From the NCBI GenBank assembly GCA_013115145.1, contig JAAPAO010000081.1, positions 1 to 64,000 on the forward strand: a stretch of DNA of 64,000 nucleotides, read 5' to 3'. Under the pieces are notes generated by a model. That model ran no database searches, was not told the DNA's origin, and saw nothing but the letters and a program-made list of their open reading frames with translations. Position 1 is the first letter of the stretch. Every line of letters begins with the position of its first letter. Made by a program: the position numbers and the translations under genes. This stretch comes from Perkinsus chesapeaki ATCC PRA-425. Lineage: Eukaryota > Protista > Perkinsozoa. This document shows positions 510-45,698 of this stretch, piece by piece.

Positions 510-3111
510 ATGGCCGACAATAACCCACTGTATCCCCCCGTCGTCCCTGCCTTTTACTTATGGCTTGCACTCTTCTGTGGCGTCGTAACATGTGCTACAT
601 CCTTCATGATCTTCACCCCCGCTGTCACTGACGTCTTCTCGGCTAATTTTCTGGTAAGCTCGGCGCATCTTCACCTTGCGTTGTGGAGAGATCACCTTTC
701 CTGTTCAGATACTTGGTGTTGTAATATCTATTATTACAGCCCAGCTCACTTTGGCGGACGCCTTCGAGTGGACCGCCAAGACCGTCATCGCTTCGTGGTA
801 CGGAGCTGGTCTAGGTTGCCTCGTGGTGGCTTTTGTAACCGCGGTAAATCACGGCAAGTACGATCCCTATATCGGGGTCCTGGTGGCGGTGCCCTTTGCT
901 ATTCTGGTTTGTCTAGCTGAACAGTCCAGTGTAACTTATTGCAAGCTGACCTCCCTCTACCGAGGCGATAAAGCTCTCCTGTTAATTCTAGTCGTTGTTG
1001 CTTTTGGGGGCGACGATCCTTACTGGGTCGCCCTCACCGCAGCACTGGCTTATACTATTGGTACTACCATACCTTTAATTGGAACTGTAATCCTTTGGGC
1101 CCTTAAACTCCTACCTCAGAATGGCCCCCCACCGATACCTATGTTCGCACATACGATAGCCAACTACTTCCAAGAGACCACTGCTGTTGCTCCTGTTGGT
1201 GAGGTCCAAGAGCAAGAGCTGGACTATCTCTGGAAGCAGGTCAACAAAGCCTATATGGTGGCAATACGCACACCAGACCTTCATCTTCGTGGCATTATAT
1301 TCTCTATGATATCTTCGCTCGGTACAGTGCGTCACTCACTGAAGTTTGCCTCGTACAGTGACGCTGCTGTTCAGTATCTTTGGGAGCCGCTCGACCACAC
1401 CTTAAATACTATTCGAGTCGAAGCGATTTGTCGACTACGTGCTGGCCGTGATGACCGATTTTTCAAAGCTGACTTGTGTGATCTTTCCCGAGATTTACGC
1501 CGCAAAGTTACCGAGGCGACGGCGGCCTATATGGAGGCAAAGTCGCTCGGGCAAACACCTTCGATACCCGACTCCGAGTTCGCCCGTTTCGGATTTGCCA
1601 CTCGGGAGATCGCACGCTTTACTGCCCTGCTGGGCGACTTTGTATTTAGAATTGAGAACCCTCCGTCTAGGATTCGTACAGGATGGGCGTTGGTTAAATT
1701 CAGGGTCAAAGAGTGGCTGAAGAAGCCTCTTTTCGAGCCTTTAAATCCGCCCACTCCTTGGCGGTTCCGTCTGGCCTTCCCTGTACGTTCGGGCCTTGGC
1801 GGCTGCATAGCTGCGTGGATCATCCTGGGCATTGGTGAGGCCTTGGGTGAGGTAAGGCTGTATGGTCTGTGGATGCTACTGCCCTGTGTGTTCTGCTTTC
1901 TACCTACTCCGGGTGCTTCCCTGGTTAAGGGCAGTAGGCGGCTTGGTGGAACCTTACTGGCTGGTCTGATAGCGGTACTGTGCGTTGTCATCCATCCATA
2001 TAACGACGCTGCCTTCTTCGTTGAACTATTTGTTATTTCCTTCGCTGGAAAGCTTATGAAGTGTCACCCCAAGATTGACTACTCTGGTTTGGTCTTCGCC
2101 TTCACATGGTCTATCGTGGGCTTGCTGGCCGGGATTGACGGTCACTTGGAGAAGCGCGAGATGGTGTTACGCTCTTTGTACAGAGCAGTTTTGACGCTGT
2201 GTGGCGTGCTCCTGGCAACACTGATATCCGCTTTGGTTATGCCGGTCTTCGCCTACGGTAGACTAACTCGCGCAACTGCCCGTTGCCTGCAGTTTACGGG
2301 TGACGCAGTGGCCGAGTCGGTAGAGAGAATCCAGACGGCGACGGCGGAGAACCGGCCAGAACGTGGGGGAGTGGACGAGCGCGTGGTGGGTATTTGCGAC
2401 GAGCTGATGAAGCATCATGAAGAGCGATGGTCTCAGATCACCGATGCTACTGTGGAGACAAAGCTCTTCACTTTGCTTCGGGGGTACTTCAGATCTGAGG
2501 AGCGTCGCGTGAATGCATCACACATTATAGCGGCGCAGCCTTTGCTGGACAGGTTGAATAGACGGACGATGGTCGTGGTGAGCGCGGCGGACTCCTTCCA
2601 TCCCAGCTGGAGAGTGAAGAGCCCCGAGCTGGTTGAGGTGCTGGAGTCTCTCAGTGTCTTCGCGGAGGATATGCGAACGGCTGCGGAGGAGTTGGCCAGT
2701 GTGGCGGTGAAACATGGTAATCGGTTCGGCCTGTGGGAGGCTCGGACGGGGAGGTTTGACGAGGCGGTATCGCTCCTGGGGAAGGTGGAGCGCCTGATGG
2801 GCAAGGCACGTAGGGATTTGCGGAACAGCAGCAGAGAAGCTGCTGGAGACGGCGACCTGCTAACTCAGTGCGTGGAGGAGGAGAGCGATCTGGACGACCT
2901 TTACTCGCTTGTGAGAGCGCTGGGAATCTTTGTGGAAGCCTGGAAGCAGGTGGAGTATATGATGTACTTCGGTTACACTAGAGGGTCCATGAACCCCTTT
3001 GACCTCCGAACTATGCAGAGCAAGACTATTGAGATGAGAAGGTTCTCCACTGGAGGAATCCCTCGCCTTCGAACGCACTCGTTTAACCCTACTGGCCCAG
3101 ATCAGGTTTGA
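510..3111 (+). CDS. ALMT/FUSC(ArAE)-like two-module membrane protein, array gene 1 (subfamily A); exons 510-653, 709-3111
   Basis: ATG510; GT..AG intron 654-708 joins in frame to the 811-aa ORF. Contains WMLLPCVFCFLPTPGASLVKGSRRLGGT, resembling the ALMT W-A-V-x-T-V-V-V-V...GATLxKGLNRxxGT segment, plus two hydrophobic TM clusters. Confidence 0.85.
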
Positions 3112-3663
3112 TCATGGTTGTTGCTGCTGTTGTTTATACTACTATTAGCTACTACATTCACCTCACCACAGAGACGTCTTTGACTATATTCTCACTACTA
3201 TATAACCTTTTGATGTATTAAGTGAGGCGATCTCGCGTTGTGTACAAGTCGCTAATAACAGTCTTTACTTAGCTTTTTATCGGCGTTCACTATGCGACCT
3301 TCACTGAAGGGAGGCTGGGGACTCTGAGGTACTATTTGATTGGGGACCGGGAAGGCTCTGGGGATGTCGCTGATTCTTACAGATGGTCTGCCGTGGCCAA
3401 TCTGCTGTCAGCCTCCTTCAACTATCTTGTGGTAGCTCGTTCTGGTAGGTAGGCTCCGATAGTGCTCCATTGCTTTGCGCGTAGTGTTTGCTGCAGTGAC
3501 ATCGCTTTCCGCGTCTGTTGCGATTCTAGTAACAACTTCCTACCAAACCTGGACATGAGAGGGTCTCAACCAGTGAAGTCTTGTGTTTCGATGCACCAAG
3601 ATGTGGTTGGTTTTCGAATTTGGGCATATTGGTTTACATAGTGTTTCTCTCGCCTCGTTGTTA

Positions 3664-6281
3664 ATGGCAAATAGCTGTTCGCCGCCTAGTATCTTATCTT
3701 ACAACTTCTACTCGGCCTTCTTCTCGGGAGTAGCAGCCTGTGCTTGTTTCTATGCTGTGATCCTTCCCGAAGGTCCCCTGACTGGCATCACGGTAATACC
3801 GTCTCTCATGCCGGTGGATGACCGTTGATCGCTCTGTCAGGTGGTAGCACCGCTTTGGGCAGGGATCGTTATGTTCGTAGACATCCCCACTACCGCCGAT
3901 TGGTGCCTTAAGACCATAACTGGCACCATCATCGGTGCCGCGGTGGGCCTTGCCGTGGCCTCGGTGGTGCATGCTTTAACAGAGGAGTATGAGCAGTATG
4001 TCGGAGTGATAGTGATGATTCCATTTGGAACGCTGCTGGTGGTTAGCGATGCCTCCACAGGCTGCAAGCTGTTCAGCGTTTACCGCTATGATGTTGCGCT
4101 GATCACATCCTATGTGATCGTCGCTTTCGGCCCCGGCAGCTACCTCCAGCGAGCCGTAGTTATGTCTCTTACGTTCCTGATAGGATCCGCGGTCCCTCTT
4201 GCGCTAGTGCTATTGTTGAATGTGCTGTGGAGGGTACCGCGTTCGACAGCGCCCCCACTGCCCGCGTTTGCAAATCGGGCTGCTAGTTTTTTTGAGACAC
4301 TCGCGACGCTGGCTATGAGCGGGGAAAGCCAGGCCGAGTGGCTGGACAAGGCCCGTCTGGACTTCGAGGAGGTTTGGCGGCAGGCCTCTGACACCGCTGC
4401 CAGCGATCCTGAGCTCCGCACGGTTATTTACCGTATGGGAGCGGAGCTGCTGGCTATGAGGAAGACTATTAGGGACGGCCTGTACAGCGAGGGGATCTTG
4501 GAGTTCATGTGGAGCTCGCTGTTGATGGATCTCACAGACCTCCGCATTGAAGTTGTCTCCTGGTTGAAGACGCTGACGAGGCCGAGAAGCCGGGATCCGA
4601 GGGAGGCTGAGGGCCCTAATTTGAAGGCCAGCGCGAGGAAGCTGGAGTCGCGGCTGGTGGAGAGATCGCTGGACTATAGCAGGTTGCAAGTTTCTGGGAA
4701 CGCTGGGATTGTTCCGGCCAATGACGTTGTTCGTTTTCAATACGCGATGTCATCTGTGACGAGGTTTGCGATGCTGACCCAAGAGTTTTATGAGATAGTA
4801 CGGAGCAAGGAGGAGGAATCGCAGGGCACGATGGTAGTATGGGAATAATTATGTGGCGCGCGGTCCTGTGTTTAGTGCTATTTGTACTTCAGAGACTAAA
4901 AGGCGTGCGGAAGTTCATCACCCAAACAGTCCGTTATTGGCGGGAGTGGTATGCGAGCCCGTGGTTTTCCAACGGTCCCTTTCGTGGGAAGCTATCCTCC
5001 AGATTGGCGTTTCCGATTCGCCTAGGCCTCTCCCTCACAGTGATGTGCCTTGTCATTATAGCTTGGGGCAGATCTGATCCCAAGATGGCCGGGCATGCAC
5101 TGTGGGCTGTGATTGCCATTATGCTTTGTTTTCTACCGACAGCGGGAGCATCTCTGGTGAAGGGGGTTCGGCGAATGGTCGGGACTCTGCTGGCCTCCGG
5201 CATCGCAATCGCTTGTGTGGCCATCCATCCACATAATATAGAGGCTTTCTTCCTAGAGCTATTTATTATTACTTTCGTTGGTAAGCTGGCCAGCTTCAAC
5301 TCCGACATAGGTTATGCTGGACTAGTTTTCAGCCTCACTTGGACGATCGTGGCCATCACCCCCGAGAGCTTCAACGGCGATGAGCCTGTTCAAGCCGTAT
5401 TGGTGGCAGCGGCGTGGCGAATGGCTCTCAACAGCATTGGTATTGTTGCGGCCACAGTGCTGTCCTGGATCGTCTTCCCGACATTTGCGACCACCAAGAT
5501 GGAGCGCTTGACTGCATGGGAGCTGGTCTCGCAGGCGAAGCTGGTAACGACGGCCTTGGAGCACCTTGTGGGCTTCGACATGCCCGAAGCGGAGGCAGAT
5601 GCGATCGGTACAGAGGACGGTTCAATGTTATACCTGTCAAGCGCCGAGCGCCACGCGCTAGATTTGGACGCCAAGGCGGAGGCGGTGATACTGGGGAAGA
5701 TGGGGGTGCTGGGCCTCGCGACGCAGAGAGTTCTTGACGTACAGGCTGATGTTGATCGTCTGGGCCGCAGTGCTATAGTGGCGAGGGTCGCTATTATGGA
5801 CTGCGCTACCAGCATTTCCGGGCCGGCCACTGAGGAGTTGTTGGAACCTCTCAAAGGGCATCTGTCTCGCATGGTGATGACACTGAAGGACGCGGTGTCT
5901 CGGGTGGTGCTGTTCATCGTCGACAGCAGCAGTATTATGCCGGACAACGTAAATGCGCCGACGCCTATTCAGGACCCTGGAGTGCAGATGCAACGGACTT
6001 ACGATGCGTTCGTTAAGCTGCGAGAAAGGCTCATTATAGTTCCACTTGACGGCAACTCGGACCTCATGGCCAATGTCCTCAGCTCTGGCGGGATCCCCTT
6101 CTATCACGCCCTTTATACGCTAACGCTCTTTATAGAGGATTGGCGGGAGGTGGAGTGCTGCCTTCGAGGGGTGGACAGTCTGCAGGGGGCTGGTCTGGTG
6201 AATGGCATCCAGGATGATGGTGATGCTGAAGAGGGCGCTCAATGCCGAGAGTCGGTCGCGAAAATCGCGCCGCCTTGTTGA
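3664..6281 (+). CDS. ALMT/FUSC-like protein, array gene 2; exons 3664-3792, 3841-4833, 4893-6281
   Basis: Two phase-0 GT-AG introns join the ORFs at 3841 and 4839 in frame; motif WAVIAIMLCFLPTAGASLVKGVRRMVGT. Confidence 0.85.
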
Positions 6282-6396: not shown

Positions 6397-9235
6397 ATGC
6401 TTGACCAGCTACCATCCATACCTATATACAAGCTGCTAACAGCCATGTACACGGGCCTACTGGCCTGTCTCTGCTCATGGGCAGTCTTCATCATGCCTGG
6501 CGGCCGCGGAGCTAACATTACGGTAGTAGTAGAGGGCAATGGTGGTTGAGAGATCTAGCAGTGCGAGTCTTTGAGTTATCGATGTTCCTTTTTGAAATAG
6601 AACTCAGTGGAATGCAGCTTCCATTTGGGGAGAAATTAATATCGAAGCCTGAATGTTAAGCAAGCTTGTGGGAGATGGATTCATTTACACTGCAAAATTA
6701 CACCGGCCCTTAGCGGCTGAAGCAACCAGTATCTTGCTGGTTGCATTTCCTCGGAGCACTACTGCCTCCCATCTTCACCATTAATTTCTCTGCTTCTTCA
6801 ACTCAGGTCCTCGCCCCAGTATGGGCTCTCATCACTGCCTTCCTCAACATCAGTGCTAACTACGACCAATCCCTTCGTTCCCTCGTCGGTGCAGCACTAG
6901 GCCTGTTTAACACAGAGCTAGTGGCCCTCCTGGTCACTGTATGCTCCACGACGGGCTACAACGCTTGGATCGGTGTCATCGTCAGCTTTCCTCTCACGTT
7001 CCTCCTGGCCATTGGCGACCCTGCCAGCGGCAGCAAGCTGTGCAACGTGTTCCGATCGGATGTGGCGATGGAGTGCATGTACATCCCTCTGGCATTCCCC
7101 AACGGCCAGCCCTTCTATCACGGCCTCCTCACTTCGGGGGCGTTCGCGGTTGGCTCAGCCGAGACCTTTATTGCAACTACCATTCTTAACGCATTCAATT
7201 TGTTACCTAGATCCTCGGTGCCGGCCATCCCAGCGTTCGCTCGGGCTGCTGCCGACTACTTCGAGACGCTGGCGACATATGTTACTAGCGGCACTGACCA
7301 CCTCAACTTCATCGACCGTCAGAGGGCACAGTTTGACGTGGCGTGGCGAGCTGCAGCGAAGGCGGCTCCCAACCCCAAGATACGCAGCATTATCTACCAG
7401 ATGTCCTCGGAACTCATCGCCCTTCGCCAGACCCTCCGTGATGGCGGCTACAGTCAGAGCATTCTCCACTATATATGGCACCCGCTGGTCCCCGATTTGG
7501 TGGACTTGCGGCTCGAGGTGGTATATTGGCTGAGGCAGACTGCGGTGCCCCTGAAGCCTGGCGATGAGATTGACGCGACGGAGCTGCTGGCGATGGCCGA
7601 GCAGGTCCAGGGGCGGCTTACCGACGAGTCTCTCTTGTACAGCAAGGCGGTTGTGTCGGGAGAATCCGATTTGTCCCCGGCGAACGACATTGTCCGTTTC
7701 CAGTTCGCGTTCTCGTTGATAGCTCACTTTGCTGTGTTGGCTGATGAGTTCCACACACTGGTGAGAGACTATGAGATGAGTCTGCCTGAGAAGACCAAGA
7801 GGGTAAGCTGGACCAGCCGTTTCGCGGAACACAGTGGAGTGTTTTCTCTGTTCAGTTTGACTGGTGGGGCCGACTTACACGTTATCTCTCCGAATGCAAG
7901 AAGTATTGGATACATTGGTGGCATCTCCCCTTCTGGGCCTACGGCAATATGACCCTCAGGCAGAGGCTTACCCATCCCCTTAGACTGTCCCTTTCTATTA
8001 CCCTCTTTGCCTTGCCCCTTATCGCCTGGGCCCAGGGCGAGCCTGTTGTGGAGTCGTACGGCTTCTGGGGCCTAGTACCCTTGCTGTTCTGTCTCCTACC
8101 AACTCCAGGAGCATCATTGGTGAAGGGAACGAAGCGTATCATCGGCACCCTCCTGGCAGCTGTAACTGCCATCATTTGTGTGTCGGCTAATCCACGTAAC
8201 ATCCCCGCCTACGAGGTGGAGATGTTCGTGGTGGTGACCCTCGGCAAGCTCGCCTCGCTGTATTCCAGCATCGACTATGCTGGCACAGTGTTCGCCTTCA
8301 CATGGATGATCATCGGGATTATTCCGAGTTTGAATGTCACCTTCGACAGGACCGAGATGATCTACTGGTCTCTGTGGCGTGTAGCGCTGACTCTCATTGG
8401 CACCTTCGGCGGTACCCTCATTACTTGCTTCATCTTTCCCACATTCGCCATGACCAAGCTCGACAAGGAGTCGGCCCACGAGCTGCTTACTCAGGCGGAC
8501 ATGGTGGCCAGCTCTATAGAGGAGCTCTGCCGCATAGAGAAGGGCCCCGCGGTCAATCCCGACAATCGGCGTTATGAAGTTGGCGACGCGTTCTGGAAAT
8601 CCTGCGATACCAGAACTGGCCTCACCCCGGAAGCCAGAGCGGAAGCGCTGGTGCTTGGGAAGACCTCTTTCGTGGACGATACTACTCGGGCGGTGATCAA
8701 GATCCAAGGCAGCATCAGCTGCATGGGAAGGAGCGCTCTGGTGGCCCACGCTACCATCGCCGACTGCACCCGCTCCATTTCGGAGCCGGCTATCTCGCTG
8801 GTCTTGGACCCCCTCCGAGAGCAGCTTTCAAGGCTTTCTGCTGCCATAAGGGATTCTTCCTCAAAAGTGGCGTTGCAGATTCTCGATGACCACAGCTCGA
8901 AGAAAATGATCGTTGATGGCGATTTAGTGGGCAGTCAAGTCAACGTGGAGATGCAAAACATGGTCGACCACTTTGTCGAGATCAGGAAGAATCTTTTATC
9001 AGGCGAGGACGCCAACCTCGACGGTTTCACCAAGGCCATCCGGGCCGGCCTGTACACACTGTACCACAGCTTCTACACGCTGAGGCTGTTCACTGATGAC
9101 TGGGTGAAGATCGAGACGGTTATCTTGGGCTATAAAGAGCTCAGTCCAAAACGGACGAGAGCGTTCAGTGGTGCACCACAGGAGATGGTCAACCGGGCCA
9201 GGGCCCACATCAAGTCCGTGGCGGTTAAGGCCTGA
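6397..9235 (+). CDS. ALMT/FUSC-like protein, array gene 3 (subfamily B); exons 6397-6522, 6807-7802, 7856-9235
   Basis: Phase-0 introns 6523-6806 and 7803-7855 give one continuous frame; motif FWGLVPLLFCLLPTPGASLVKGTKRIIGT. Confidence 0.85.
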
Positions 9236-9681: not shown

Positions 9682-9753
9682 AATATAACGGAAAATATAG
9701 ACTATACCGAATCTATTCTATCCATTAGAAGATCTTTATAAAAACGTTCCAAC

Positions 9754-12575
9754 ATGCCCAAAGTCGCTCCGGACATTCTTCCAAGCTTCACGTCATTTCA
9801 GCTCTTGAACGCAGCATACGGAAGTCTCGTCGCATGCCTGGTCGCCTCTGGACAGTTTCTTCCGTGGTTTGGGGACCGGTTCAGTATCCAGCTCTTCGTA
9901 AGGGGGAGGCGAAGTGACCACGTATAGAAGCTTGTCGTACTGAGGCCCCTTATAGGAACGAGTTTGGACGCTGGACTAGTGCAGTTTCATGTTCGTGGAA
10001 TTTCCGCGGTATGTGTAGATAACTGAGAAGCTCATAGAAAATATGTTACTTGTGGAAAAAGTAGCATCAGGCCTTCCTTTGGGAACTAAATATATATGAT
10101 GTTCCTCTGCGACCGCCTTACTTCGACAAAGCATACAATCTTTCCTCCTCAGGCACTTTCGACAGCATGGGCACTGGCCTATACAAGTCTGGACTATTCC
10201 TTTGCCGTTGACTTTGCTTGGAAGACCTACATAGGAGCTTGCATGGGAGCGGCTCTCGGTGCCATATTGGTTTACGTCACTGCGCCCCTAAATGGCGGCG
10301 TCTACAGCCCCATGTGGGCATCGCTGTTCGGACTTCCCTTCTGTTTTATCCTCGCTATGGGGTGCCAGGGCAAAGCCAGCGAGGCGTACTCTTACACTAG
10401 TGCGCTTCTCAGAATGTACAGCATACTAGCCTTTGGCGAAGGCGAGCCGTACAACAAGGCCCTCTTTATTATTGTTGTCGGATTTTGCTCGGACATGGTT
10501 CCGATGCTTGTCGTCTCGGTCCTCAACTGCTTCGGCATGCTCCCCTTAAAGGCGCTGCCTCCTCTTCCGCGTTTCGAGCAAGCTCTGAAGAGCTACCTTG
10601 AGCTTTCGGTTTTCTATTTGGTCGACGCGAGGAAACACAAGAGATATCTGGACAGGAAAAGGGACGACCTAGTGGAAGCGTTTCGAGCAGTCTTAAAGGC
10701 GAATGTGCCGAAGCCGTTGAAACTGGACGCGTCGAACGTCGTTGGATTGCTGCACGGCTTTCATGCCTCCGCCACGACCAGGGCCTTCGGACGGCAGGCC
10801 ATCGAGCATTTTTGGGCACCCTTGCGCGGCGATATAGGGAAGCTGGCCTCACTTATGGGCATGGTGCTGACGGAGCCATTTGACGAGGAACTCACCAGAC
10901 GGCTGAGAGATTCGAGTGAACGACTTCTGCGGCAAGTGAGGGTGTCTACGGTCGAGTACGGTCGGAAGGTGGCCGATGCGAAGTGCCCACTTTTCTCTAC
11001 TAGAGAGTTGGCGCGGATAGAATTAGCTCTCCTTATCGTGCCGCGGTGCAGCCTGATAGTAGCTGATTACGTGGAGAAGAAACATGTGCAAGAATTGGTC
11101 TGTCGCGGGCATGTGGCTTGCACGGTGAGACCTCATTTTCATTCTGTCTCTTCTACACGCATCCTCTTCAGTTTCCTATCCCTACATTTCTCCGAGACTT
11201 TAAAGCTTGGATCCGCAAGCCGTGGTATCCTGCCAGTCTCTCTCGATGGGAGCGTGTTCGATATCCTCTTCGGTTCACCATATGTCTGCAGGCTGTGGTC
11301 TGGCTAGCAGTTGGCTTGGCCAGTCGCTTCGAGATTGTGGCCGCGGAAGGCTGGTGGATCATCGTCCCCGCGATTCTCTGTTCCTTCGACGCCTTCGGCC
11401 TGACAGTCAGCAAAGGCGGTCGAAGAATTCTGGGTATCTTCCTGGGCGGTGTATTGGCGCTGATACCCCTTGCCATTCACCCAGGCCAAAGGGCGCCCTT
11501 TTTGCTGGAGCTCTTCATTGTGGGAGCAATCTCTAAGCTGGTTACTGATCTGCCCTCGATAGACTACACCGGTTTGCAGACGGGCGTTACCTTTATCATA
11601 GTCGGCTTTGCTGATGGTATCAATCCTGAGGAGAGCGAAGCGAAGCGGTATTTGTTGGCTGGGCTTCGGCTCCTGTGTAACAGCGGTGGACTTATCCTTT
11701 TTATGCTGATGACACTATTGACGAGACCGCCGTACTCGGGGGAGCTCCTGGCGAAGGCGACTTCTAGAGAGATCGACAGTATCTCCGGTTACGTCACCTC
11801 CATTGTTCGGGCGCTCCGTGGGCGGCCCGATGTAGCCTTCCCTGACAGGGTAGAGAAAGGGTTGACCTTGATTGATTTGGACGGAGCACGAATCGCCAAG
11901 ATTCCTTCGGTCAGAGCGGAAGCCAGGGCCCTGAGGGTGATAGGCATTTCTACAACTCGCTGTGGGGTCGGCTCTGCTAGGCTGGTAGCGGCCCAGGCAT
12001 CGGTGCCCGGCTTACTGCACGGGGTTGCCATGGTCTATACGGAGCTTAGCAACTGCGATTTGAAAATGGGTGTTGCGGCAGGCAAGCTCCTTTTGGAACC
12101 GGTCCAGAGCCTCCTGGAGGACTTCGAGGATTCACTCACCCTGGCCGCCATAGAGATCAACAAGGCTCTCACTAGTAACGCTGGCAGCGGTCAGGCTATA
12201 GCGGCCACACGGGAGGCACTGGACGCATATCTTCGCCTGGACGCGGCGTTCCAGAGCGTCAGGGCGGATCTTCTATATCGGCGAACTTGGGCCACTTCGG
12301 GGGATGTGATGGCATCAACCAAGCTAGCGGAGGTTGTCTCTGGTGGCGGCGGCGTCAGCTTGCATGTGGCACTGTATTCTCTGGGATTTTTCGTGGAAGA
12401 ATGGGTGCAGTTCGCCAGCCTTCTGTTAGGGGCCGACATTAGGTTCCCGAACGAGCCTAGCGCAGACGATTCCACAGACACAAGTCCGTGTGATCGCCAG
12501 TCGACCATCACCACCCTCTCCCGGTGCCTATCGGAAGGGCAGGGTATCGTTCACCGCAAAGTTAGTGCCCGATAA
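9754..12575 (+). CDS. ALMT/FUSC-like protein, array gene 4 (subfamily C); exons 9754-9897, 10153-11124, 11172-12575
   Basis: In-frame splicing at positions homologous to the other paralogs; motif WWIIVPAILCSFDAFGLTVSKGGRRILG. Confidence 0.83.
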
Positions 12576-21613: not shown

Positions 21614-21841
21614 CCTACGTGTGTGACACACGGTGTGTGCGGGTGAACCCCACACGTATGCAAGTCCCGCGTGGAGGCTGATAGTTGTCTCGCGACGACC
21701 TTGCCTATGTTCATATCTTACATAAACGCCAGAATCACTATAATTGCTCTGACTTTATCAGATTTCAAAAGCTTTTGACTGTCGTTCTGGGTGGGTGTTG
21801 GTGAAATGTACCTGCAGTTTGTTCACTTTTCTAATATTTTT

Positions 21842-24407: not shown

Positions 24408-24655
24408 TAGTTTCCCATTGTATCACGTACGTATTCTGAACACAGTAATTACCGTTCATTTAGTCTTTAGTGTTTTCTGTTCAGCAATCTACTTTGAATC
24501 ATAGCAATTCTTTCCCCCTACTGTATACTGTACTGCACACTGTCATTTAGCCGTGATATGCTTCCTCGCGTCAGCCGCTGGTGCTTGTTTCGGTGGGATA
24601 GTGTGATTGAGGCTAAGTGTTGGTAGGTTTTTGTTCCTCTTTAGTGTCCTACTCT

Positions 24656-27271: not shown

Positions 27272-28113
27272 ACCACATATATCACATTTACGTATCGTGC
27301 CCTTCTCTTACCATCATCTCCATTTTAGTGCCATAGTTGTCCGTCGCTGGTGACGGCAACTGTGCAGTTTGTCCTTCGGTGCTGTACGTGATACAATGCA
27401 CAGTTTATCGCGTGCCGCCCTCCCTGGACGCCCGCAGTGATGACGCAACAGCCCGGAGGTAAGTGAGCATCTTGAATGATCTGTGAGTCTAGATTGTATA
27501 AATTGCGGATGTGTATAAACCCCTAGTGATTAAAGCTTAGGGTCGTACCATTGTGCAGATCGTTCAGTTTCTACTTGTGTCCACTGTCCAAACCTGTTTG
27601 CGGTAACTGAATGGTTTGATTGTTGTTGCAGAGTTGTACCCCCTTTCCTACTTGGAGAATACTGTTGGGTTGAAGCACTTCATACTCAGGACTACGTATG
27701 TGCAGCAAGGCTACGCTTCTAGCTTTCTGCATTGCATTGTTTTTCGAATTTGAACTCACAATTGATATGCGCATCACCTTTAGGTAATTAGTAATTACTA
27801 ACTACTTCAATTACTGACCCACTCCTCATTGTGATTGAACAAGGCGGTCGTATATCCGTTATCATCAAGACATAATTATAATCCTTTTCACCATCTTATA
27901 TTTCAGGCAATGGGCATCCTGCTGACTTGCGCTTCACTTCGTAGTTGTCATGCTTCCCATAATATCGGACACTTCATTGGTCATCATCTGTTTGCACTAA
28001 TAACATATTTGCCTATGCTGCGCTCGGTCTACACCATAAAGGCGACACCTTTCTTGCACAGCGTACGCTGTGACTTGAGAATCATTCTTTCAGTGCTTAG
28101 TGCCTTCATATTT

Positions 28114-34203: not shown

Positions 34204-36923
34204 ATGACAACGAAGTCTCGTGGCGCTTCCGTGCCATACCGCCTCCCGCAGTATCCTCGATACCGACTGCAGGTTGCGGCGTATGCCGGCTTTCTAGCGT
34301 GTATCTGCGCAGTTCCGCAATTCTTGCCTACACTCCAGCGAACACTGCAGCAACATCTTTATGTGAGTAGCAGCGGCCGTCCCTACCGATTTTGTTGCAG
34401 CAGCAATGGATTGGTTGGCTTCGGCTTCGTACGGTTCTCTATGCTCCGGCCTCTGTGGTGATTGTTCAACTTAGCTGTTATTGCATTTCAGGTGATGGCC
34501 ATCATGTATACGTATGGAGGAGCAACGCTTAACTCGAAGGCCTTCAAGGTTGGCCCTTGGCGACTTCTGATAACTTCTTGTCTTGGATCCTCTGTTGGTT
34601 ATGCTATCGTTCTTCTCGAAACTGCTATGGGCGGCGGTGTCTACAACCACTTCTTTGGTGTTTTGCTTGCATTCCCTTTTATACTATTGTCCAGCATGGT
34701 CCAAGCAACATCAAAGTGCAAACTGGCTGAATTCTATTCCTATATCAATGGCAACTTAATGCTCATATCAGTCGTCGCTTTCTCCGGTACCGAGGCTCTC
34801 AAGTGTATGTACTCTGCCATTTTCGCAGGAGTTCTGTCCTTTGTTGTATTGTTCGTTTGCACGGGGACACTCGATCTTCTTGGTTTGCTGCCACTTGCAG
34901 CTCCCGAGCCCCTATCGGCATTCGAACACGCTGCGGCCACCAGTTTCCAATCGAACGTCAGTTACATTCTGGATGGAGACCTGCATCTTCGTGAACTCAC
35001 AGAGCAGCGACAACAATTGGTCAGTGCTCGTAAAGCAGCATTAGCCAGCGTCCCCGATGCTGACCTGCGGCTCTGTATCTTCCGAATGACGAGTACGCTC
35101 TATGGCCTACGGAGAGCTGCACGATTTGAGCCTTTCAGTGAAGCCGCAGTGGTACATTTGTGGGAGCCGATGCAGATGGAGTTGGGAAGATTGGTTACCA
35201 AAGTTACCGCACTACTAAAGCATGAGGTGGAAGTGGAAGATATTCCCGATTTGAAGGCTGCTGCACGTGATGCTCTTATTAAAATAAAAAAGATTAGCAT
35301 CGAGTATACTCGGGCAGTTGCTGATCAGAAGTCCGTTGTGATTTCTGCTAGAGAGATGGCTCGAGTAGAGTTTGCCATGTTAGCCATACCAAGATTTGCA
35401 ATACTCGTTGATCGTTACTTCAAGCTGAAGGGTAGTCGCGGTGCTCCAAAGCCATCCTTCTGGCGCTATGTAATAACCTTGTAAATGTCACTGTTACTTT
35501 CCCATTTCTCGAGTAGGTACCCATATCCCCTTCAATGAGACACCCCATTGCTTTCATTAAGCGCCCAATGTGGCCACCGGGAACGTCTTTACGAGATAAG
35601 TTAGCATTTCCTTTGAGGCTGGCTATCTCGATCACTATTGTGTCCGAAGCCGCTCTAGCAATTGGCCAAGTGTATCCTATTGTTCTCACTGAAGGCTTGT
35701 GGTTTGCACTACCTGTGGTAACATGCTTCCTTCCCACCGTCGGATGGACCATAGGGAAGGGCTCAAGGCGTATGCTTGGTGTTTTGATTGGCGGTGCTCT
35801 TGCTATGCTGATTGTTTACGTCAACTCGATGAATATTCCTGCAGTGATGGTGGAGCTCTTCCTCGTCGCTTCTGTGGGGAAGTTTTTTACCCAAGACCCG
35901 AGAATTGGTTACCTTGGGTTCCAAATTGTCACAACATTCACTGTTGTTGGCGTCTGCAATGCTCTCGATCCCGTACTGGATGCCGATGCTCGCATAACTC
36001 TGGCCTGGCTTCGAATGCTATTAACAGTCACGGGGTTATGCACCGCTATCTTTCTATCATTGATATCGTTTCCGTCCTTCTGCGGTCGCCGTCTGGCGTT
36101 GCAAACCAGCAAAGAGCTTCTCTGCGCATCTAACGCAGTATCAGCGCTAGTCGAGGGAATCATCGCCAGGAAGCCCGACGGCTCGACGGACCCAGAAGAG
36201 CACGGTCTGCCTACTGTGGTCGAAACCGGTTTGAGTCTGTTAAAGGAAGACAGCGCTCGTCTAGCAGAGAAAGCGTGGTTCGCCGAGGAAGCCGTGTATC
36301 TCGCGCTGGTCCGTGGCAGCTCAACGCGCTGCTCCGTCCCTGCCAAGTGTCTTGCTGCCGCTCAAGATGATGTTGCGAGGCTCAGCAGAAGTGCTGTCGT
36401 TGTCGAACAAGTCTTCTGGAGCTGCGACAAGAAGATGAGTCCAGCAACCGATAGACTGCTTCTTGATCCTATTAGACCTTTGTTGGACGATCTTGCAAAA
36501 CATCTGCAACGGTCGGCTCAAGAGTTAGATCGTACAATGCGCAGCATCGTGGACCCAGAGTCCGCAGTACGCTGGGCTGAAGAAACCTTGGAGTCAATGC
36601 TGTATTTGTATGCTACATTTGATGAGAACAGAACAAAGCTTCTTTTCAAACGTACCTGGGCAGCCGAAGGTGAAGTAACTGACTCTACCCATATGATAGA
36701 AGTTATGAGCAGTGGTGGCGGTGTCGGCCTTCATGAAGCTATCCATGCTATAAACGCATTTATAGAAGATTGGGTTACGGTTGTTAACAAGCTTTTCGCG
36801 TGCCAGCTGAGCGTTCCTAACTCCGCTGGTGAAGAAAGTGTTATGTCTTTCGGAAGTCTTGACACCAGTACAGGCTCTAATGACAGTGGTATTCGTAGGA
36901 GAGCTGAAACGTGTTCATACTGA
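34204..36923 (+). CDS. ALMT/FUSC-like protein, array gene 12 (subfamily D); exons 34204-34362, 34492-35469, 35517-36923
   Basis: In-frame splicing; exon 1 is nearly identical to exon 1 of gene 11. Confidence 0.85.
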
Positions 36924-37355: not shown

Positions 37356-39997
37356 ATGTCCAGAAAGCCTGAGAGCTTCTCTGCGGCTTGCCGTCTCCCT
37401 CAGTATTCTCAATACCGAGTCAAGCTGGCGGTGTATGCCGGATTTGTTGCATGTATTTGTGCAGTTCCGCAATTTCTACCAACCCTTCAGAAGCTCTTAC
37501 TACAGCATCTTTACGTAAGACTCTCATCAAAGGCGTTCATTACTAACCTTTATGATTTCCTTTCAGGTGGTTGGGCTCTTATATGGGGTCATAGCAGCCT
37601 CGCTCGATGCGAAGACTTTCATGAATATGCCATGGCGTCTCTTGCTGGGCGTCAGCACTGGTGCATCCGTCGGCTATGCCATTGTCCTCCTCGAAACAGC
37701 TATGGGCGGTGGAACATATAACCATTTCCTCGGTGTTCTCATAGCATTCCCCTTTCTTCTATTGTCTAGCTTGGCCCAAGCGACATCTAGAAACAAATTT
37801 TCTCAGCTGTTTTCCTATATAAGTTGCAATTTGATGATGGTCTCTGTGGTAGCCTTCTCTGCAACAGAGCCTCGGAAGGGACTGTTTTCTGCTATATTTG
37901 CAGGGAGCATCTCGTTCGTAGTTCCCTTGACGCTGGCGGGGACTCTCAACATATTGGGCTTACTCCCACGTACAGCCCCCGAGCCGCTGCCAACATTTGA
38001 GAACTCTGCTGCAGAGTATTTCAAATCCAACGCGTGCTATATTCTGGACGGTGAAATGCATCAGCGAGAACTCGATGAGCAACGAAAGCAGCTTATCAGC
38101 TCACGGAAAGCGGCCCTCGCCAATGTTACTGACGGTGATATGCGGCTCTGTATCTTCCGAATGACGAGTACTCTTTATGGTCTACGGAGAGCTGCACGAT
38201 ATGAGCCTTTCAGTGAAGCCGCAGTGGTACATTTATGGGAGCCGATGCAGATGGAGTTGGGAAGATTGGTTACCAAAGTTACCGCACTACTGAAGCATGA
38301 GGTGGAAGTGGAAGACATTCCCGATTTAAAGGAAGCTGCACGTGATGCTCTCATTAAGATAAAAAAGATAAGCATCGACTATACTCGGGCAGTTGCTGAT
38401 CAGAAGTCCGTTGTGATTTCTGCTAGAGAGATGGCTCGAGTAGAGTTTGCCATGTTAGCCATACCAAGATTTGCTATACTCGTTGATCGTTACTTCAATC
38501 TAAAAGAGAAGCATAAAACACCCAAACCTTCCATTTGGCAATATGTAGCAATTCGTAGTGGAGTGTACTTCTTTCCAACTCCTCTCTCAGGTTCCCCTCT
38601 CTCCGCCTCTACGGCATCCAATAGACTTCATTAAAAAGCCGGTCTGGCCGGCTGGCACGTCCCTGCACGACAAACTAGTGTTCCCTTTACGACTAGCCAT
38701 ATCTGTAGCTGTCGTTGCGGAAGCTACCCTAGCTGTCGGCGAAGTTTATCCTATACTCCTCACTGAGGGTTTATGGGTCTGCTTACCGGTTCTCACTTGC
38801 CTTCTGCCTACTGTCGGGTGGACCATAGGAAAAGGTCTCAGGCGTATGCTTGGCGTGTTGCTGGGCGGCTCCCTTGCTATACTTATCGTCTATATAAACC
38901 CATTAAATATCCCAGCCGTTGAAGTGGAGCTCTTTGTGGTCGCCTCCATGGGAAAGTTCTTCACTCAAGATCCCAGAATTGGGTATCTAGGCTTTCAAAC
39001 GATGGCATCGTTCAGTGTGGTGGGCGTATCTAATGCTCTCGATCCTACACTCGATGGTGAAGCTCGACTGCATCTAGCGTTGCTACGAATGCTGTTCACT
39101 CTTGTTGGTCTTTGTATAGCTATATTTCTCTCCTTGCTCACTTTCCCTTCGTTTTGTGGCCGGCGGTTAGCCATCCAAACGAGTGAGGAACTCCTCTGTG
39201 CTTCTGGCGCCGTTTCGGCGTTAGTGAGGGGGATGGTAGCTAGGAGTCCAGATGGTTCGAAAAGCCCTGAAGACCGAGATCTGCCTACCGTAGTCGAAAC
39301 TGGTATGAGCCTCTTGAAGGAAGACAATGCCCGGCTTGCAGAACAACCGTGGTTCAAAGAGGAGGCTGTATACCTCGGGTTGGTGCACGCTTCCTGCACA
39401 CGGTGCGCTGTAGATGCCAAGTGCTTGGGTTGTGCGCAGGATGACATCACCAGGCTGAGCAGAAGTGCCGTGGTTGTGAGTCAAGTCTTTTGGAGCTGCG
39501 ACAAGAGGATGAGCTCCTCCACTGACCGTTTGCTGCTTGATCCGATTCGTCCATTGCTCTCAGATCTTGCAGGACAGCTCGATCAATCAGCCTTGGCCCT
39601 CGACCGCGCTTTGAGGAGCAAAGGCGGAATTAAGGAGGCTGTTAACGCTGCAGCCGACACACTAGAATCAATGCTATATTTGTATGCTACATTCGATGAG
39701 AACAGAACAAAGCTTCTCTTTTCACGTACCTGGGCAGCCGAAGGTGAAGTAACTGACTCTACCCATATGATAGAAGTTATGAGCAGTGGTGGCGGTGTCG
39801 GCCTTCATGAAGCTATCCATGCTATAAACGCGTTCATAGAAGATTGGGTTACGGTTGTTAATGCACTTCTTGGATGTCAACTTAGTTTGCCCCACGCTCC
39901 TATCGAAGAGAGTGCTACATCGCTTGCAAGTTTAGACACTACCACTGGCTCTGACGACGGGAGTGTCCGAAGACGTGCTGAAACTTGCGCTTACTGA
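37356..39997 (+). CDS. ALMT/FUSC-like protein, array gene 13 (subfamily D); exons 37356-37514, 37567-38544, 38591-39997
   Basis: In-frame splicing; exon 2 is 978 nt, as in genes 10-12 and 14. Confidence 0.85.
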
Positions 39998-40285: not shown

Positions 40286-43024
40286 ATGGGGAATAAACAA
40301 CCACCCGAGGATGTTCCGCGGTTCACCCGTTTCAGCCTTCTGAACGCGCTCTATGCTGGCTGCATGGCTGGCCTTATGACAGGGCCCATGTTCATTCCGA
40401 CGTTCACGCAGTTGTTCGACTCGAGAATAATGGTACGTTTAGGGAAGCCTGATTCTCTGTTCGGTGTCATTTAGCATAGAGAAATATAGTATTTAGCTTA
40501 ATCTCGTTTCGTACGAGCGACTCTTCGTGCTAAGGGAATCTCACAGAGTTCTCCGTGAATGCCCACTGCTAGTGTTTCAGGCTCTCGGTACAATATGGGC
40601 AGTCCGCTGCAGCTCCCTCGACTTTCAATCCGCCTGCTCAGCATCCTGGACCGCCGTTTTTGGTTCCTTGGTCGCCGCTGCGGTGATCGCTGTCGTCATA
40701 CCCTTCGCTACTGCGATATGTGGCGGAAGCATCAATCTCTACGTTTGCTCCATTGTGATGATGCCTTTTTGTTTCGCTGCCTCTCTGGCCGCTTCGTCAA
40801 CCAAGTGCAAGCTCGCTCAGCTTTACGACTATAAAACCACTCTGACAGTAGCGTATTTGGTAATTTTCTTCGGTACCAGCCCTCTGGATGTGAGTGTGGT
40901 ATCGGTTATCCTTGTGGGTGCCTGGTCAACTCTGATCCCGCTTCTGATAACATCGCTACTCAATCTCTTTGGTGCGCTGCCGAGAAGTGCCCTTCCACCT
41001 ATGACAGTGTTTGAACGCTCTGCTGCATCCTACTTGGAGACCGGCATCATGTTTATCCTAGAAGGGGAGCTCCACCAGGACGAGCTAGAGCGTAAACGTG
41101 ATAAGCTCAGTGAAGCTCGGAAAACACTGCTGCGGTCCACAACAAGCCCTGACCTGAAGTTCTGTATATTTCGCATGTCGAGCTTGTTGTACACGCTGAG
41201 ACGCTCGTCCAGGTTCACACCGCTCAACAAAGCGGCTGTGGAATACCTGTGGGTGCATGTCGAGCGAGAGATTTTCGAGATGGTTTCCACGATGGTCGTA
41301 ATTCTCCGACATGAGGGTGACCAGGCAGATCTTGCTCGGCTGCGTGCAGGAATATCGGTGGTTAGCGATAAGATTCGCCACACAATCATCGACTATACTA
41401 GGGGAGTTGCCAAAGGGCAATTCGATCGTCTTCCAGTCGATGAGCTTATCAGGATGGAGCATGTGATGTTATGTATCACTCGGCTTGCGAAAGTGGTGAC
41501 GGATTATTGCGACATCAAGTCCAGCATCACAGTGAGCGGGTTCTCCATAAAGAAATATGTAAGTTGCTCCACATCGGAATACTATTTCCAATCTTTGTTA
41601 TTCAGTTACCTGTCCCTCCACTTGCGTGGCATTTAAGGGCCTGGCTAAAAGAGCCAATGTACCCTCTACATTCCACCTGGTTCGAGCGGTTTTGGTTCCC
41701 TGCCCGCCTCACCTTGTCTATAACTGTGGCCACGCTGGGTGTCTTGGGTGCCGCGGAGGAATACCCGGTGCTCCTAGTGGAAGGTTTCTGGGCATTGATG
41801 CCCGTAATTAGTTGCTTTCTCCCCACAGTTGGATCAACCCTGAGTACGGCTGTTAGGCGTTTTCTTGGAGTTATGGTTGGCGGCGGGCTCGCTATGATCG
41901 CTGTGTCGGTCCACCCTCTGAACGTAGCTGCATTCATCATCGACGTCTTCTTGGTAGCGGCCGTGACACGATTCCTTGTTGTTAGTTCTAGGATTGGTTA
42001 TGCTGCAATGCAGATGTTCATCACCTTCATTGTAGTCGGTGTCGTTAGTGGTATAGACCCTGACCTCTCAACAGGCACCAGAGTCTTAATGGCTGCCGAG
42101 AGGATGCTCTATACGCTCATTGGTGTGGCTGCCACTATAGTGCTCTCCATGTTGACTATCCCAGCCTTCATCTGCCGCCAACTTGCTCACAAAACTGCCG
42201 ATGAGCTTCGAACATCCGCTGCGGTTCTGATACATGGTATTTCCACGCTTGTAGAATGCGACGATGACGAGTCGCCTGGGGGAAGCACTGGAATTAGTGA
42301 AGACTCGGTTGTCAGTACCGGTACCGCCATTTTTGAGAAGGACACTGCGAGGGCTGCTGCGCTAGATGGCGCTCGCGAAGAGAGTACTCTGTTGCACTTG
42401 GTCGGTGTCAATGCTTCCAGATGCGGAATTAATTCGTCGAATATTCTTCTTGCTCAAAAGCAAGTAATGAGGGTGTCTCGTTGTGCCATGTCCGCCTGTA
42501 TTAGTCTGGATCGGTGCAGGCATCTGATTGGCGTAACTGCGCGTAAACAGCTTCTCAACCCTGCACGAGAGTCTCTGGATGGTGTAGCGTGTGCGATGTT
42601 GAAATCGTCCTTGGAGCTCGAGACAATGCTGCGAAAGCACGGCGATGCAGCGCGAGCAATCAACACCACCGAGGAGCTCGTGGAAGCCACGGCAAACGCT
42701 TTCAGACATTTTGAACGGCTTCACGAGAGGTTGTTATTCAGCAAGACATGGGCAGTCGATGGTGACGTTATGGATTCCACAAAGCTAGTCGAAGCATTAT
42801 CGAGCGGCGGAGGCGTAGGCCTCCACGAAGCGCTGTACGCTATCATCGCGTTTGTCGGCGAGTGGCTCGGTGTTGTGAATACCCTGCTCGGCTGTGGTCT
42901 CAGTGTATCTTTGTTGCGTGGTTCGGAAACCGAGATGAAGGTTTTGAAGGTTCCTACACCCATTGTACGCGGTCGAGCTCGTGCCAAATCAGAGCAGCTT
43001 GAAACTAGTATCCACGACATGTGA
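40286..43024 (+). CDS. ALMT/FUSC-like protein, array gene 14 (subfamily C-like); exons 40286-40432, 40581-41558, 41606-43024
   Basis: Phase-0 introns 40433-40580 and 41559-41605; motif FWALMPVISCFLPTVGSTLSTAVRRFLG. Confidence 0.83.
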
Positions 43025-43328
43025 GCTCTGATTGGAAGGCAAATCTTGATTTTACTTGATTGCGGCTTCAACGCGCTAGTTGCTCGCGTATTTGTCAGTC
43101 TTATTCGGCATATTTGTTAACTCTGGCTTTAACACCATTCTTGTGTTGTTCCTGTAGGGGCGGGGGTCGAGCGTCCATTCAAGGATATCATCCGACGGTT
43201 TCGCTCGACTGTGTACTTGTTTCTTCATACTGCGGAGTCACCCGCCGGGACACCACTGTATTCCCATTCCAGGCTGAATCACGGCCAATCTAGGTAAGCT
43301 TGTGAGCTGTTCAGCTTTTTGTATCACT

Positions 43329-45698
43329 ATGCACATTCCTCTTCTCCATCCTCTGAACGCCCCATCGCTCAAAAAGGGGCACGGCAATGCTGATTGGTGG
43401 GGATTGACTCCCCGATCTATAGCAGAGTTACAGACAGCTATTTTCACTGGCGTGACGGTCTGTTTAACATCTACTACGGTTTTTAATTCAACAATATCGT
43501 TTATCTTTCCACCCCAGTTCATGGTAAGCCCTCCCACGCCTCCGTGATGTCGTTTATACTGCTTTTCTCAGATTCTCGGTTTAGCCGGCGCATTGATAGT
43601 TTCGTATCTCGAGATGCAACTTGCCGTCGAGTGGTCTTTAAAGACTACCATCGCGTCCTGGCTCGGCTGTGCCTGTGGGTGTCTAATCGTTTATGTGGTT
43701 CCTTTAATCAACCAAGGAGAATATAATCCTTATTTCGGTCTCCTACTTGCTGTACCATTCTCGTTCCTCCTATCATTGGCAGACCAAGCGGGTGAAGTCT
43801 ACTGTAAGCTCAGTTCGGTCTATCGGGGTGACAAGGCCCTCCTTCTTTTAATCATTCCAGTGGTTTTCGGTGGTGATGATCCTTACTGGTCCGCGATAAC
43901 GGCAGCCATTGGGTACACTGTTGGCTCAGCCATACCTCTTTTGGGGACAAGTTTTCTGTGGTCCTTGGGTGTACTACCGGACACACGAGCAGAGTCGCTT
44001 AGAGCACTCAGTCTCAATTTGGCCGACTATTTTGACGAGGTTGCCTCGCTGCGAAAGGACCGAGACCACCAAGTAGCAGTGTTGCGCCGAATGTGGAGCG
44101 ACCTTTACAAAGCCAGTACCGAAGCTGCGACGTCCACCAGCGACTTGAAGCTACGTGGACTGATCTGGTCGATGGTCGCTTGTTTGTCCACTGTGAGACG
44201 GTCCTCCCGGCGCCATGCCTGCGACCCTGTTGTATTGGAGAGGCTTTGGCTGCCATTTGAAGGATCCGTCGTATCGCTTCGCCAGAAGGTCATATGCACC
44301 CTCAGAATGTGGGAGACATTCGACGAGTCGGATACAAAGATAGCTGATGCTGCTGGTGAACTGCTAGCTTCTGTAGAGCATTTTATTACTGATTGCGAAG
44401 TACCATCTGGACCGGAGTTGACCAATTTTGAATTCACCGTCAATGAGATGGTAAAGTTTTCTCTACTTGCCCAGGAATTCCTCATCAGAGTGAAAGGTCC
44501 ACAGGAGGGCTCGTGCATGCACAAGGTTGTCGATTGGTTGCGACAGCCGCTCTTTGCGCCAGCCAGTCCTGGGACCACCTGGAGAGTGCGGTTTGCTTAC
44601 CCTCTAAGAGCTGCGGTTACTGTTCCCCTGGTCGCCTTATTCATTTTAATTGGTGGGGAGCACTTTGACGTACTAGCTCACTATGGCTTATGGATGATAC
44701 TACCCTGTGTTTTCTGCTTCCTTCCTACCCCTGGTGCGTCTATCCGGAAAGGACTGAGGCGTATTCTGGGCACTGTTGTAGCATCGGTGCTGGCGGTTGC
44801 ATGTGTCTGCTTGCATCCCAATAATGATGGCATCTTTCTCTGTGAGCTTTTTTTCTTCTCTGTCATCGCCAAGTTGATGTTCTTTCATGACACACTGCAA
44901 TATTCTGGATTAGTATTTGGCTTCACCTGGATTATTGTCGGGCTCGGTCCCGGGATTGACACCTCTTTGCCGGTCGGCAGCAAGGTCGTTCGTGCCGTAC
45001 ATCGGATGGATATGACTGTTGCCGGCGTCATTCTTTCTATTCTACTGGCCTCTCTGATTTTCCCTATATTTGCCAACAAGCGTTTGCGTAGAGCGACAGC
45101 GCGCTCGCTGGAGCTTGTTTCTAATTCGGTTGCTAATGCATGCGAGTCCCTGGTCCACAAGACACCGTGGAATCGCGAGGCCCTCAGTGAGGACGTGCTT
45201 GATGCGGCCGTGTTCTTAGCGAAGAGCTACGCTGACCGTAATGCTCAGATTGCTGATGCAAGGGCTGAATGTCAGGCATTGCGTTATCTGTCTCCGACCA
45301 GGCATCACGAGCTGGCGCATGTGGTGGCTGCTCAGCACCTGCTGGACCGATTAACCAGGCAAGCTCTGGCTGTTATTTCCGCCGTCACTACATGCTTGGC
45401 AACGATACCAGTTGATGGCTGCGGCCTACCCAAGCCTGCCGAACAAGACTTACTTTTGACTGCTGCCGTGATCCGCCGAAGAGCTGGCCTCCTGGTGGCA
45501 GGTGTCAGAATAAGGAAGTTCAAGATCACTGATGTTACCGAGTCTGTGATGCGCTCCATCGACTGTCTTGAGTCGAATATTCGGAACTGCAATGCCGTTG
45601 AACACTACGGCATGGACTGCTTGGTACACGCCCTACAGGACTTCGCCGAGGTGTGGGAGGAAGTTGAGCGGATGGTTGCCAAGGCGAAGGATAGCTAA
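43329..45698 (+). CDS. ALMT/FUSC-like protein, array gene 15 (subfamily A); exons ~43329-43523, 43572-45698
   Basis: Intron 43524-43571. Shares YRGDKALLL, GGDDPYW and WMILPCVFCFLPTPGAS with gene 1. The start codon is uncertain. Confidence 0.8.

Follow-up and report, generated by a model that had tools for sequence, protein, structure and literature searches.

The first 64,000 nucleotides of contig JAAPAO010000081.1 (88,181 bp; assembly GCA_013115145.1) of Perkinsus chesapeaki ATCC PRA-425, hereafter the window, carry 15 paralogous genes (u1 to u15) arranged head-to-tail on the + strand between positions 510 and 45698, which are interpreted below as an old tandem array encoding putative channels of the ALMT (aluminum-activated malate transporter) type. 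Perkinsus is an economically important pathogen of oysters and clams. The initial annotation, made from the nucleotide sequence alone, had correctly placed the array in a marine parasite: P. chesapeaki is a parasite of marine bivalves, and the product of u15 is 100% identical to its deposited protein FOL47_010456. The genes stand in GenBank as hypothetical proteins and in UniRef under the automatic name 'Aluminum-activated malate transporter 1', and a literature search found no paper joining Perkinsus with ALMT or 'malate transporter'.

A listing of open reading frames (ORFs), translated from stop to stop, reveals 15 blocks, each about 2.4 kb long, on the + strand (658-45695), most of them composed of two overlapping or abutting frames, and BLASTP comparison of the uninterrupted-looking units 1, 8 and 15 with all pieces identified every block as a collinear full-length paralogue. 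The conserved bodies never begin with ATG. Between 46 and 284 nt upstream of each lies a short ATG-initiated exon, whose product contains a single hydrophobic helix and the conserved sequence Tyr-x-Leu-Leu...Tyr-Thr-Gly...Cys; a phase-0 GT-AG intron separates it from the body. A second GT-AG intron at a common site (41-95 nt, mostly 46-47 nt) is needed in twelve blocks and is truly absent only from the u1/u15 pair. The gene u8 reads as a single ORF because its second intron (23007-23051) is 45 nt long, in frame and free of stops: an apparent 15-amino-acid (aa) 'insert' coincides with the intron site of the closest paralogues and is bounded by GTAAGC...TTTCAG, and in a sequencing-run contig that starts at 23052 the unaligned letters are the last 12 bases of u8 exon 2. 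Once the introns are placed, all 15 frames have canonical splice sites, lack internal stops and encode 773 to 865 aa; neighbouring starts lie 2.7-3.5 kb apart, with 115-842 nt between genes. This agrees with the earlier description of 15 co-oriented genes about 3 kb apart, with no interrupting gene and no premature stop. A scan of the regions between the 15 genes found no family relics, tRNA, Rfam RNA, tandem repeats or other genes, and no common upstream motif was found, no 8-mer being present in more than three of the 15 upstream regions. The paralogues are thus adjacent, co-oriented and uninterrupted, as in a tandem array, and their order is kept in Perkinsus olseni.

The array opens with u1 (510..3111; exons 510-653 and 709-3108), which lacks intron 2 and encodes 848 aa with ALMT and FUSC_2 matches, 82% identical to the P. 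olseni orthologue P0006. It is followed by u2 (3664..6281; exons 3664-3792, 3841-4833 and 4893-6278; 836 aa), 68% identical to P. olseni P0167; u3 (6397..9235; exons 6397-6522, 6807-7802 and 7856-9232; 833 aa); u4 (9754..12575; exons 9754-9897, 10153-11124 and 11172-12572; 839 aa); u5 (12873..15752; exons 12873-13019, 13207-14262 and 14358-15749; 865 aa); u6 (15959..18778; exons 15959-16105, 16333-17301 and 17348-18775; 848 aa); and u7 (18899..21613; exons 18899-19024, 19128-20123 and 20171-21610; 854 aa). The P. olseni orthologues of u4, u6 and u7 are 62-68%, 75% and, per aligned block, 85-95% identical, respectively. Next come u8 (21842..24407; exons 21842-21967, 22014-23006 and 23052-24404; 824 aa), without an orthologue in the P. 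olseni array, and u9 (24656..27271; exons 24656-24781, 24831-25826 and 25883-27268; 836 aa), partly covered by the run contigs. The P. chesapeaki-specific clade u10-u13 comprises u10 (28114..30778; exons 28114-28266, 28356-29333 and 29375-30775; 844 aa), u11 (31138..33800; exons 31138-31296, 31366-32343 and 32391-33797; 848 aa), u12 (34204..36923; exons 34204-34362, 34492-35469 and 35517-36920; 847 aa) and u13 (37356..39997; exons 37356-37514, 37567-38544 and 38591-39994; 847 aa), the last with the span and length of an annotated 847-aa gene. The array closes with u14 (40286..43024; exons 40286-40432, 40581-41558 and 41606-43021; 847 aa) and u15 (43329..45698; exons 43329-43523 and 43572-45695; 773 aa), which lacks intron 2 and was chosen for AlphaFold2 modelling. 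Five of the models are 100% identical to NCBI proteins: u3 (FOL47_010445, P0011), u5 (P0027), u9 (FOL47_010450, P0010), u14 (P0023) and u15 (P0001).

Two entries of the public annotation differ from these models. At u12, the annotated gene (34495-36923) yields a 516-aa product with no Pfam match, and protein P0064 matches u12 over residues 585-847 only; given the intact 847-aa, three-exon model read from the sequence, the deposited gene model looks wrong. For u8, the protein search returned no identical protein and the numbering of locus tags has no slot, and the gene may be missing from the public annotation.

Pairwise protein identity among the 15 copies ranges from 21% to 82%, with the maximum between u11 and u12. 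The initial annotation had described the paralogues as near-identical to highly diverged; the high divergence stands, the near-identity does not. The latter impression probably came from a 215-nt tract at the end of exon 2, on the + strand of u10 (29088-29304), u11 (32098-32314), u12 (35224-35440) and u13 (38299-38515), where nucleotide identity is 95-98% as against 60-85% elsewhere in these four genes. A deeply conserved nucleotide element was considered and rejected because the P. olseni orthologue shares no more than 75% identity with the tract, and localised gene conversion within otherwise diverged paralogues appears the better reading.

The family is recognised through the C-terminal half of each protein, encoded by exon 3. 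All 15 C-halves exceed the Pfam gathering scores of both ALMT (PF11744; 20.6 bits; best E 3.9e-20) and FUSC_2 (PF13515), and the full-length proteins score 38-70 bits against PF11744. A profile of the C-halves matches the solved plant channels GmALMT12/QUAC1 (1.5e-15), AtALMT9 (3.8e-15) and AtALMT1 (about 1e-12), so that the ALMT/FUSC-type affiliation proposed at first is upheld both by sequence and, as described below, by predicted fold. Related families are more distant. The FUSC profile (PF04632) matches only three of the 15 copies at E <= 0.001, the scores seen being 25-31 bits against a gathering score of 30.9 bits, which does not place the proteins in that family. Nor do the NCBIfam models of YccS/YhfK (TIGR01666/7) and MdtO (NF008510), which score 15-48 bits against cut-offs of 468-821; these models align the transmembrane domain of the Perkinsus C-half with their own second repeat. 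The link to fungal ArAE_2 proteins, suggested earlier, found no echo at profile level: neither PF10334 nor PF10337 gave a match at E <= 0.01 in any unit tested.

Residues named for GmALMT12 (PMC8890709) were compared through the profile alignment of the C-halves to that channel. Among the pore residues, W90, R113, Y169 and R198 are kept in 15 of 15 copies and K109 in 14. In the PxWxG linker motif, which together with WEP lies where the transmembrane and helical domains of ALMTs meet, the proline (P218) is present in all 15, an aromatic residue (F or Y) replaces the tryptophan in all 15, and the glycine is variable. Close to where WEP aligns in the C-half, in a weakly aligned stretch, there is an invariant Glu.

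The N-terminal half, encoded by exons 1 and 2, has no Pfam match above threshold in any copy, ALMT included (sub-threshold FUSC_2 matches occur in six of 15), and its profile has no match among PDB sequences. When N- and C-halves were compared with hhalign, the 15 window copies by themselves gave no significant match (probability 0.9%); with an alignment of 41 N-half sequences taken from the wider family, the probability was 91% and the E value 9.5e-7 over 313 collinear columns. The AlphaFold2 model of u15, built from a 45-sequence alignment, has a predicted local distance difference test score (pLDDT) of 87.6 and a predicted template modelling score (pTM) of 0.85, and is all-helical: 6 + 6 transmembrane helices are accompanied by two cytosolic domains, likewise helical. 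A Foldseek search of the PDB with this model gave nothing but ALMTs among the ten best matches, and residues 382-773 of the model cover whole ALMT chains (VIA-align Z 16-17.6 over 345-375 residues, at a sequence identity of 15-18%). For a model of the N-half (pLDDT 87.2), a structural search over 48,161 chains, run without Foldseek pre-filtering, placed AtALMT1 (Z 21.7, 346 residues), AtALMT9 (18.2) and GmALMT12 (17.6) in the top three positions, and the Foldseek top ten are likewise all ALMTs.

In the predicted models, both halves have the fold of an ALMT protomer, with six transmembrane helices in three hairpins and a cytosolic helical domain. Taken together, the hhalign match and the ALMT-fold models of both halves indicate that each protein is, as modelled, two ALMT-fold protomers in a single chain. 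The internal duplication corresponds to the layout of Transporter Classification (TC) family 2.A.85, (6 transmembrane helices + hydrophilic helical domain) x 2, and departs from the one-protomer-per-chain homodimer of the ALMTs. The ALMT fold predicted for the N-half is recognised only by fold comparison, its sequence being beyond the reach of Pfam. Conservation does not differ between the two halves (mean column identity 43% in both); the N-half carries an invariant Trp within an LWxP motif and, judged by eye, keeps at most one basic residue, at the site in transmembrane helix 3.

The array was compared with other Perkinsus genomes. P. olseni contig JABANP010000199.1 carries, in the same order and orientation, u1-u7, u9, one u12/13-like gene, u14 and a final ALMT gene that is annotated as fused with a type-II NADH dehydrogenase (NDH2) and was taken as the u15 orthologue. 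In a second P. olseni assembly, the order and orientation of u1-u4 recur on JABANN010000265.1, and a third data set contributed a Logan contig with a u14-like gene, a u15-like gene and NDH2, again in this order. The flanks shared with P. olseni are a DUF8302 gene upstream, with a PKD-channel gene beyond it, and an EF-hand NDH2 gene downstream (46322..48590 on the + strand of the window; Pyr_redox_2 and NDH2_C domains), which forms a conserved 3' boundary of the array. From the synteny with P. olseni it follows that u1 is the probable first gene of the array despite the nearby contig end.

A maximum-likelihood tree of 49 rows and 824 columns, rooted on dinoflagellate sequences, pairs each of u1-u7, u9, u14 and u15 with its P. 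olseni orthologue at 100% support in the Shimodaira-Hasegawa-like approximate likelihood ratio test (SH-aLRT), giving ten 1:1 orthologues. The clade u10-u13 has four copies in P. chesapeaki and one in P. olseni, and u8 has no P. olseni partner in the tree or the array. Dispersed Perkinsus paralogues nest among the array clades, and all Perkinsus copies form one clade apart from environmental relatives. At least 11 lineages are older than the split between P. chesapeaki and P. olseni, and the three extra copies of the u10-u13 clade were gained in P. chesapeaki after it; for u8, retention in P. chesapeaki alone and loss from P. olseni are the two alternatives. The ratio of nonsynonymous to synonymous substitution rates (dN/dS) is 0.03-0.08 between orthologues, where dS is saturated, and 0.10-0.20 among the youngest paralogues, u10-u13, where dS is 0.6-2.1. 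The family is small, with 190 representatives at E <= 0.001 among 1.84 billion in a whole-library HMMER search. The initial annotation had proposed an old, retained and intact expansion, and the collinearity, the orthologue pairs and the dN/dS values of 0.03-0.20 point the same way: with high confidence, the structural and evolutionary statements hold jointly, and the array is an old, intact tandem expansion retained under purifying selection.

Other observations concern the same loci and their surroundings. In P. olseni JABANP010000199.1 (L005, 21203-21965), the last ALMT gene and NDH2 are annotated as one product of 1518 aa, a fusion that is probably a gene-model error. The P. olseni orthologues of u1, u3, u5, u7 and u12/13 align as frame-shifted blocks only, some of them with stops, which could reflect draft-assembly error or real decay. 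Among the Perkinsus marinus loci examined, an incomplete census that is not evidence of absence, no orthologous array was found. One of these loci (L003) has a single u1-like gene, and another, GG673688.1 (L006, 10001-20053), has two adjacent distant members of 919 and 943 aa, which are 23-33% identical to those of the array and whose gene surroundings differ (acyl-CoA dehydrogenase, ankyrin and serpin). Downstream of the array in the window (46322-55380), the EF-hand type-II NADH dehydrogenase gene is followed by a 158-aa ORF, head-to-head genes for RPS7e and RPL5e, and an aspartic protease gene. A tRNA-Met (CAT) gene at 56737-56809 on the - strand is the sole RNA gene found in the window.

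Expression was examined in two small P. chesapeaki sequencing runs of 2015 that are typed 'RNA?', their status as RNA being a guess. Word sampling covered u8-u12, and matching of contigs to genes covered 21800-27300 (u8 and u9). The runs contain 37% and 26% of the sampled u8-u9 words and 12-13% of the u10-u12 words. Contigs from the runs agree perfectly (100%) with u8 exons 2 and 3 and with parts of u9. No contig covers either of the two intergenic spacers, and of u8 intron 2 only the last two bases are touched; the spliced junction of this intron, at 23052, is present in one contig. At least u8 and parts of u9 are transcribed, given runs typed in this way. A loose contig end at 22056 was considered as a spliced-leader or splice junction and rejected as a fold-back assembly artefact, because its 14 nt have exact opposite-strand copies inside u8 and u7. 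Contig ends at 23809 and 23814 were set aside as junctions, since their 8-9 nt have an exact opposite-strand copy in u8 and are too short to weigh.

The array starts 509 nt from a contig end, in a draft assembly that is unchecked against raw DNA reads, and it might on these grounds be suspected of being an assembly artefact or a graveyard of pseudogenes. Such an explanation is extremely improbable. The copies differ from one another at 18-79% of the protein sequence, which makes collapse or artificial duplication implausible; none of the 15 frames is interrupted, their splice sites are canonical and their dN/dS values are low, as given above; and the run contigs are identical to u8. The concern raised at the outset about artefactual copies is answered by synteny: the same gene order recurs in two independent P. 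olseni assemblies, and an assembly artefact is therefore ruled out.

Plant ALMTs are chains of 450-600 aa, one protomer each, that pair as homodimers around a single electropositive pore lined by transmembrane helices 2, 3, 5 and 6 of both protomers, with cytosolic domains that control gating (PMC8890709). Like the solved ALMT/QUAC channels (AtALMT1, 7VOJ/7VQ3; AtALMT9, 8HIW; GmALMT12, 7W6K), the Perkinsus C-half passes PF11744, spans the six transmembrane helices and the cytosolic helical domain, and keeps W90, K109, R113, Y169, R198 and P218, and the N-half is predicted to have the same fold. Unlike them, the Perkinsus chain of about 840 aa fuses two diverged protomers, the first of which has no Pfam signature. 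Counterparts of the whole protein in length and architecture are found among dinoflagellate and environmental homologues (Polykrikos kofoidii in EukProt, MMETSP transcripts, and ENA/JGI metagenome proteins), which share the two halves, the C-half ALMT and FUSC_2 matches and 20-27% identity. The records of them consist solely of transcripts or short contigs; in the tree rooted on dinoflagellate sequences, the environmental proteins form the sister group of the Perkinsus clade, and none of these homologues falls inside the Perkinsus expansion.

By analogy with the plant channels, we infer a channel mechanism, an anion substrate, the location of the pore and a physiological role. Exon 1 would encode transmembrane helix 1 and exon 2 the remainder of an N-protomer, made of six transmembrane helices and a PhoU-like cytosolic helical domain, whose sequence would have drifted beyond Pfam detection. 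Exon 3 would encode a C-protomer, a second unit of six transmembrane helices and a helical domain bearing the canonical ALMT/FUSC_2 signature. The single chain would most likely fold into a pseudo-dimer that is asymmetric, its one pore lying between the transmembrane domains of the N- and C-halves; the canonical ring of Lys and Arg would come from the C-protomer, and the N-protomer would form a diverged wall. Such a pore may conduct anions down their gradient, namely dicarboxylates such as malate and/or inorganic anions, and the array would then be a battery of channels differing in selectivity, gating or location. Considered as a whole, the locus is probably best explained as an ancient tandem array of 15 functional paralogues encoding double-ALMT pseudo-dimer anion channels. 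Anion or organic-anion channel activity, taken by itself, is somewhat more likely than not. The roles in osmotic or pH control, acid export or efflux of host compounds that had been suggested for the array are speculation.

Several observations weigh against this interpretation. The structures of the whole chain and of the N-half are predicted, and a pore at the junction of the halves is proposed rather than seen in the coordinates. In the C-halves, Leu or Phe stands at the position of GmALMT12 E100, and the PxWxG linker has shrunk to Px(F/Y). The N-half is without most of the canonical basic pore residues, so that the pore would be asymmetric or the N-half mainly regulatory. The runs that suggest transcription are small and only guessed to be RNA; they leave u8 exon 1 and most of u9 uncovered, and one run contig includes 12 nt of u8 intron 1. 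Finally, the nearest full-length architectures, AaeB and MdtO, are named as subunits of efflux pumps, not channels.

This last point introduces the main rival explanation, in which the proteins would export aromatic carboxylic acids or xenobiotics as secondary transporters, a role proposed for AaeB, MdtO and FusB, and the array would have diversified to expel toxic acids derived from the host or the environment. The full-length u15 model aligns end to end with the Swiss-Prot models of HI_1680, YccS, YhfK, AaeB and MdtO (TM-score by query 0.44-0.60 for the last four). These bacterial FUSC/ArAE proteins (TC 2.A.85) share with the Perkinsus proteins the two-repeat layout and FUSC_2, which is found in all 15 copies, and it is with their second repeat that the MdtO and YccS/YhfK models match the C-half transmembrane domain. 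In sequence, however, the C-half is nearer to plant ALMT (E 3.9e-20 for PF11744 and 1e-15 for ALMTs of the PDB) than to FUSC, with its three matching copies, and the MdtO and YccS scores fall far below the family cut-offs. The basic residues that line the ALMT pore are conserved, and AaeB and MdtO work with periplasmic (membrane-fusion) and outer-membrane partners that are absent from eukaryotes such as Perkinsus. An exporter role has its footing in architecture only and is weakened by the closer relation to ALMT in sequence, which makes it unlikely, though less so than the other rivals.

The double-ALMT channel reading also has to be weighed against a non-transport role in the endomembrane system, for which an ALMT-like fold would merely be a scaffold. 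Brefeldin sensitivity and trafficking have been connected with Bre4, a two-repeat relative from yeast. Fungal proteins of the ArAE_2 type are, like those of Perkinsus, eukaryotic and two-repeat, and the u15 model aligns over its whole length with the Swiss-Prot models of Bre4 (TM-score by query 0.59) and S. pombe C26F1.08c (0.67). At 977-1053 aa, the fungal proteins exceed those of Perkinsus in length, no Perkinsus unit tested gave the ArAE_2 match at E <= 0.01 that would tie it to this group, and the molecular activity of Bre4 is itself unknown. The conservation of pore residues and the strong purifying selection acting on the two transmembrane domains are in keeping with a conducting pore, and a role of the Bre4 kind is improbable.

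Both tandem expansion and two-repeat architecture are of known kinds, and the value of the locus lies in the two-module architecture, the corrected gene models and the age of the array rather than in a new principle. To our knowledge, ALMT is treated largely as a plant family, and its bacterial and fungal two-repeat relatives are without a solved structure or a clear mechanism. A wider reading, which is unlikely as a whole, would join the Perkinsus and dinoflagellate proteins into a distinct myzozoan subfamily of single-chain asymmetric 'double-ALMT' channels, whose C-repeat would be the nearest non-plant relative of plant ALMTs; the order-conserved array would have stayed together because its transcription is polycistronic, with resolution by spliced-leader trans-splicing, and would serve as an operon-like battery of channels of differing selectivity for osmotic and organic-acid balance in bivalve hosts. 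If true, such a subfamily would bear on the origin of plant ALMTs, whether by halving of a two-repeat ancestor or, in reverse, by fusion. Fifteen adjacent and strongly constrained double-ALMT genes, together with the dispersed copies, offer a natural series of putative asymmetric pseudo-dimers for questions of pore residues and selectivity, and the array points to a transport capacity of importance to Perkinsus.

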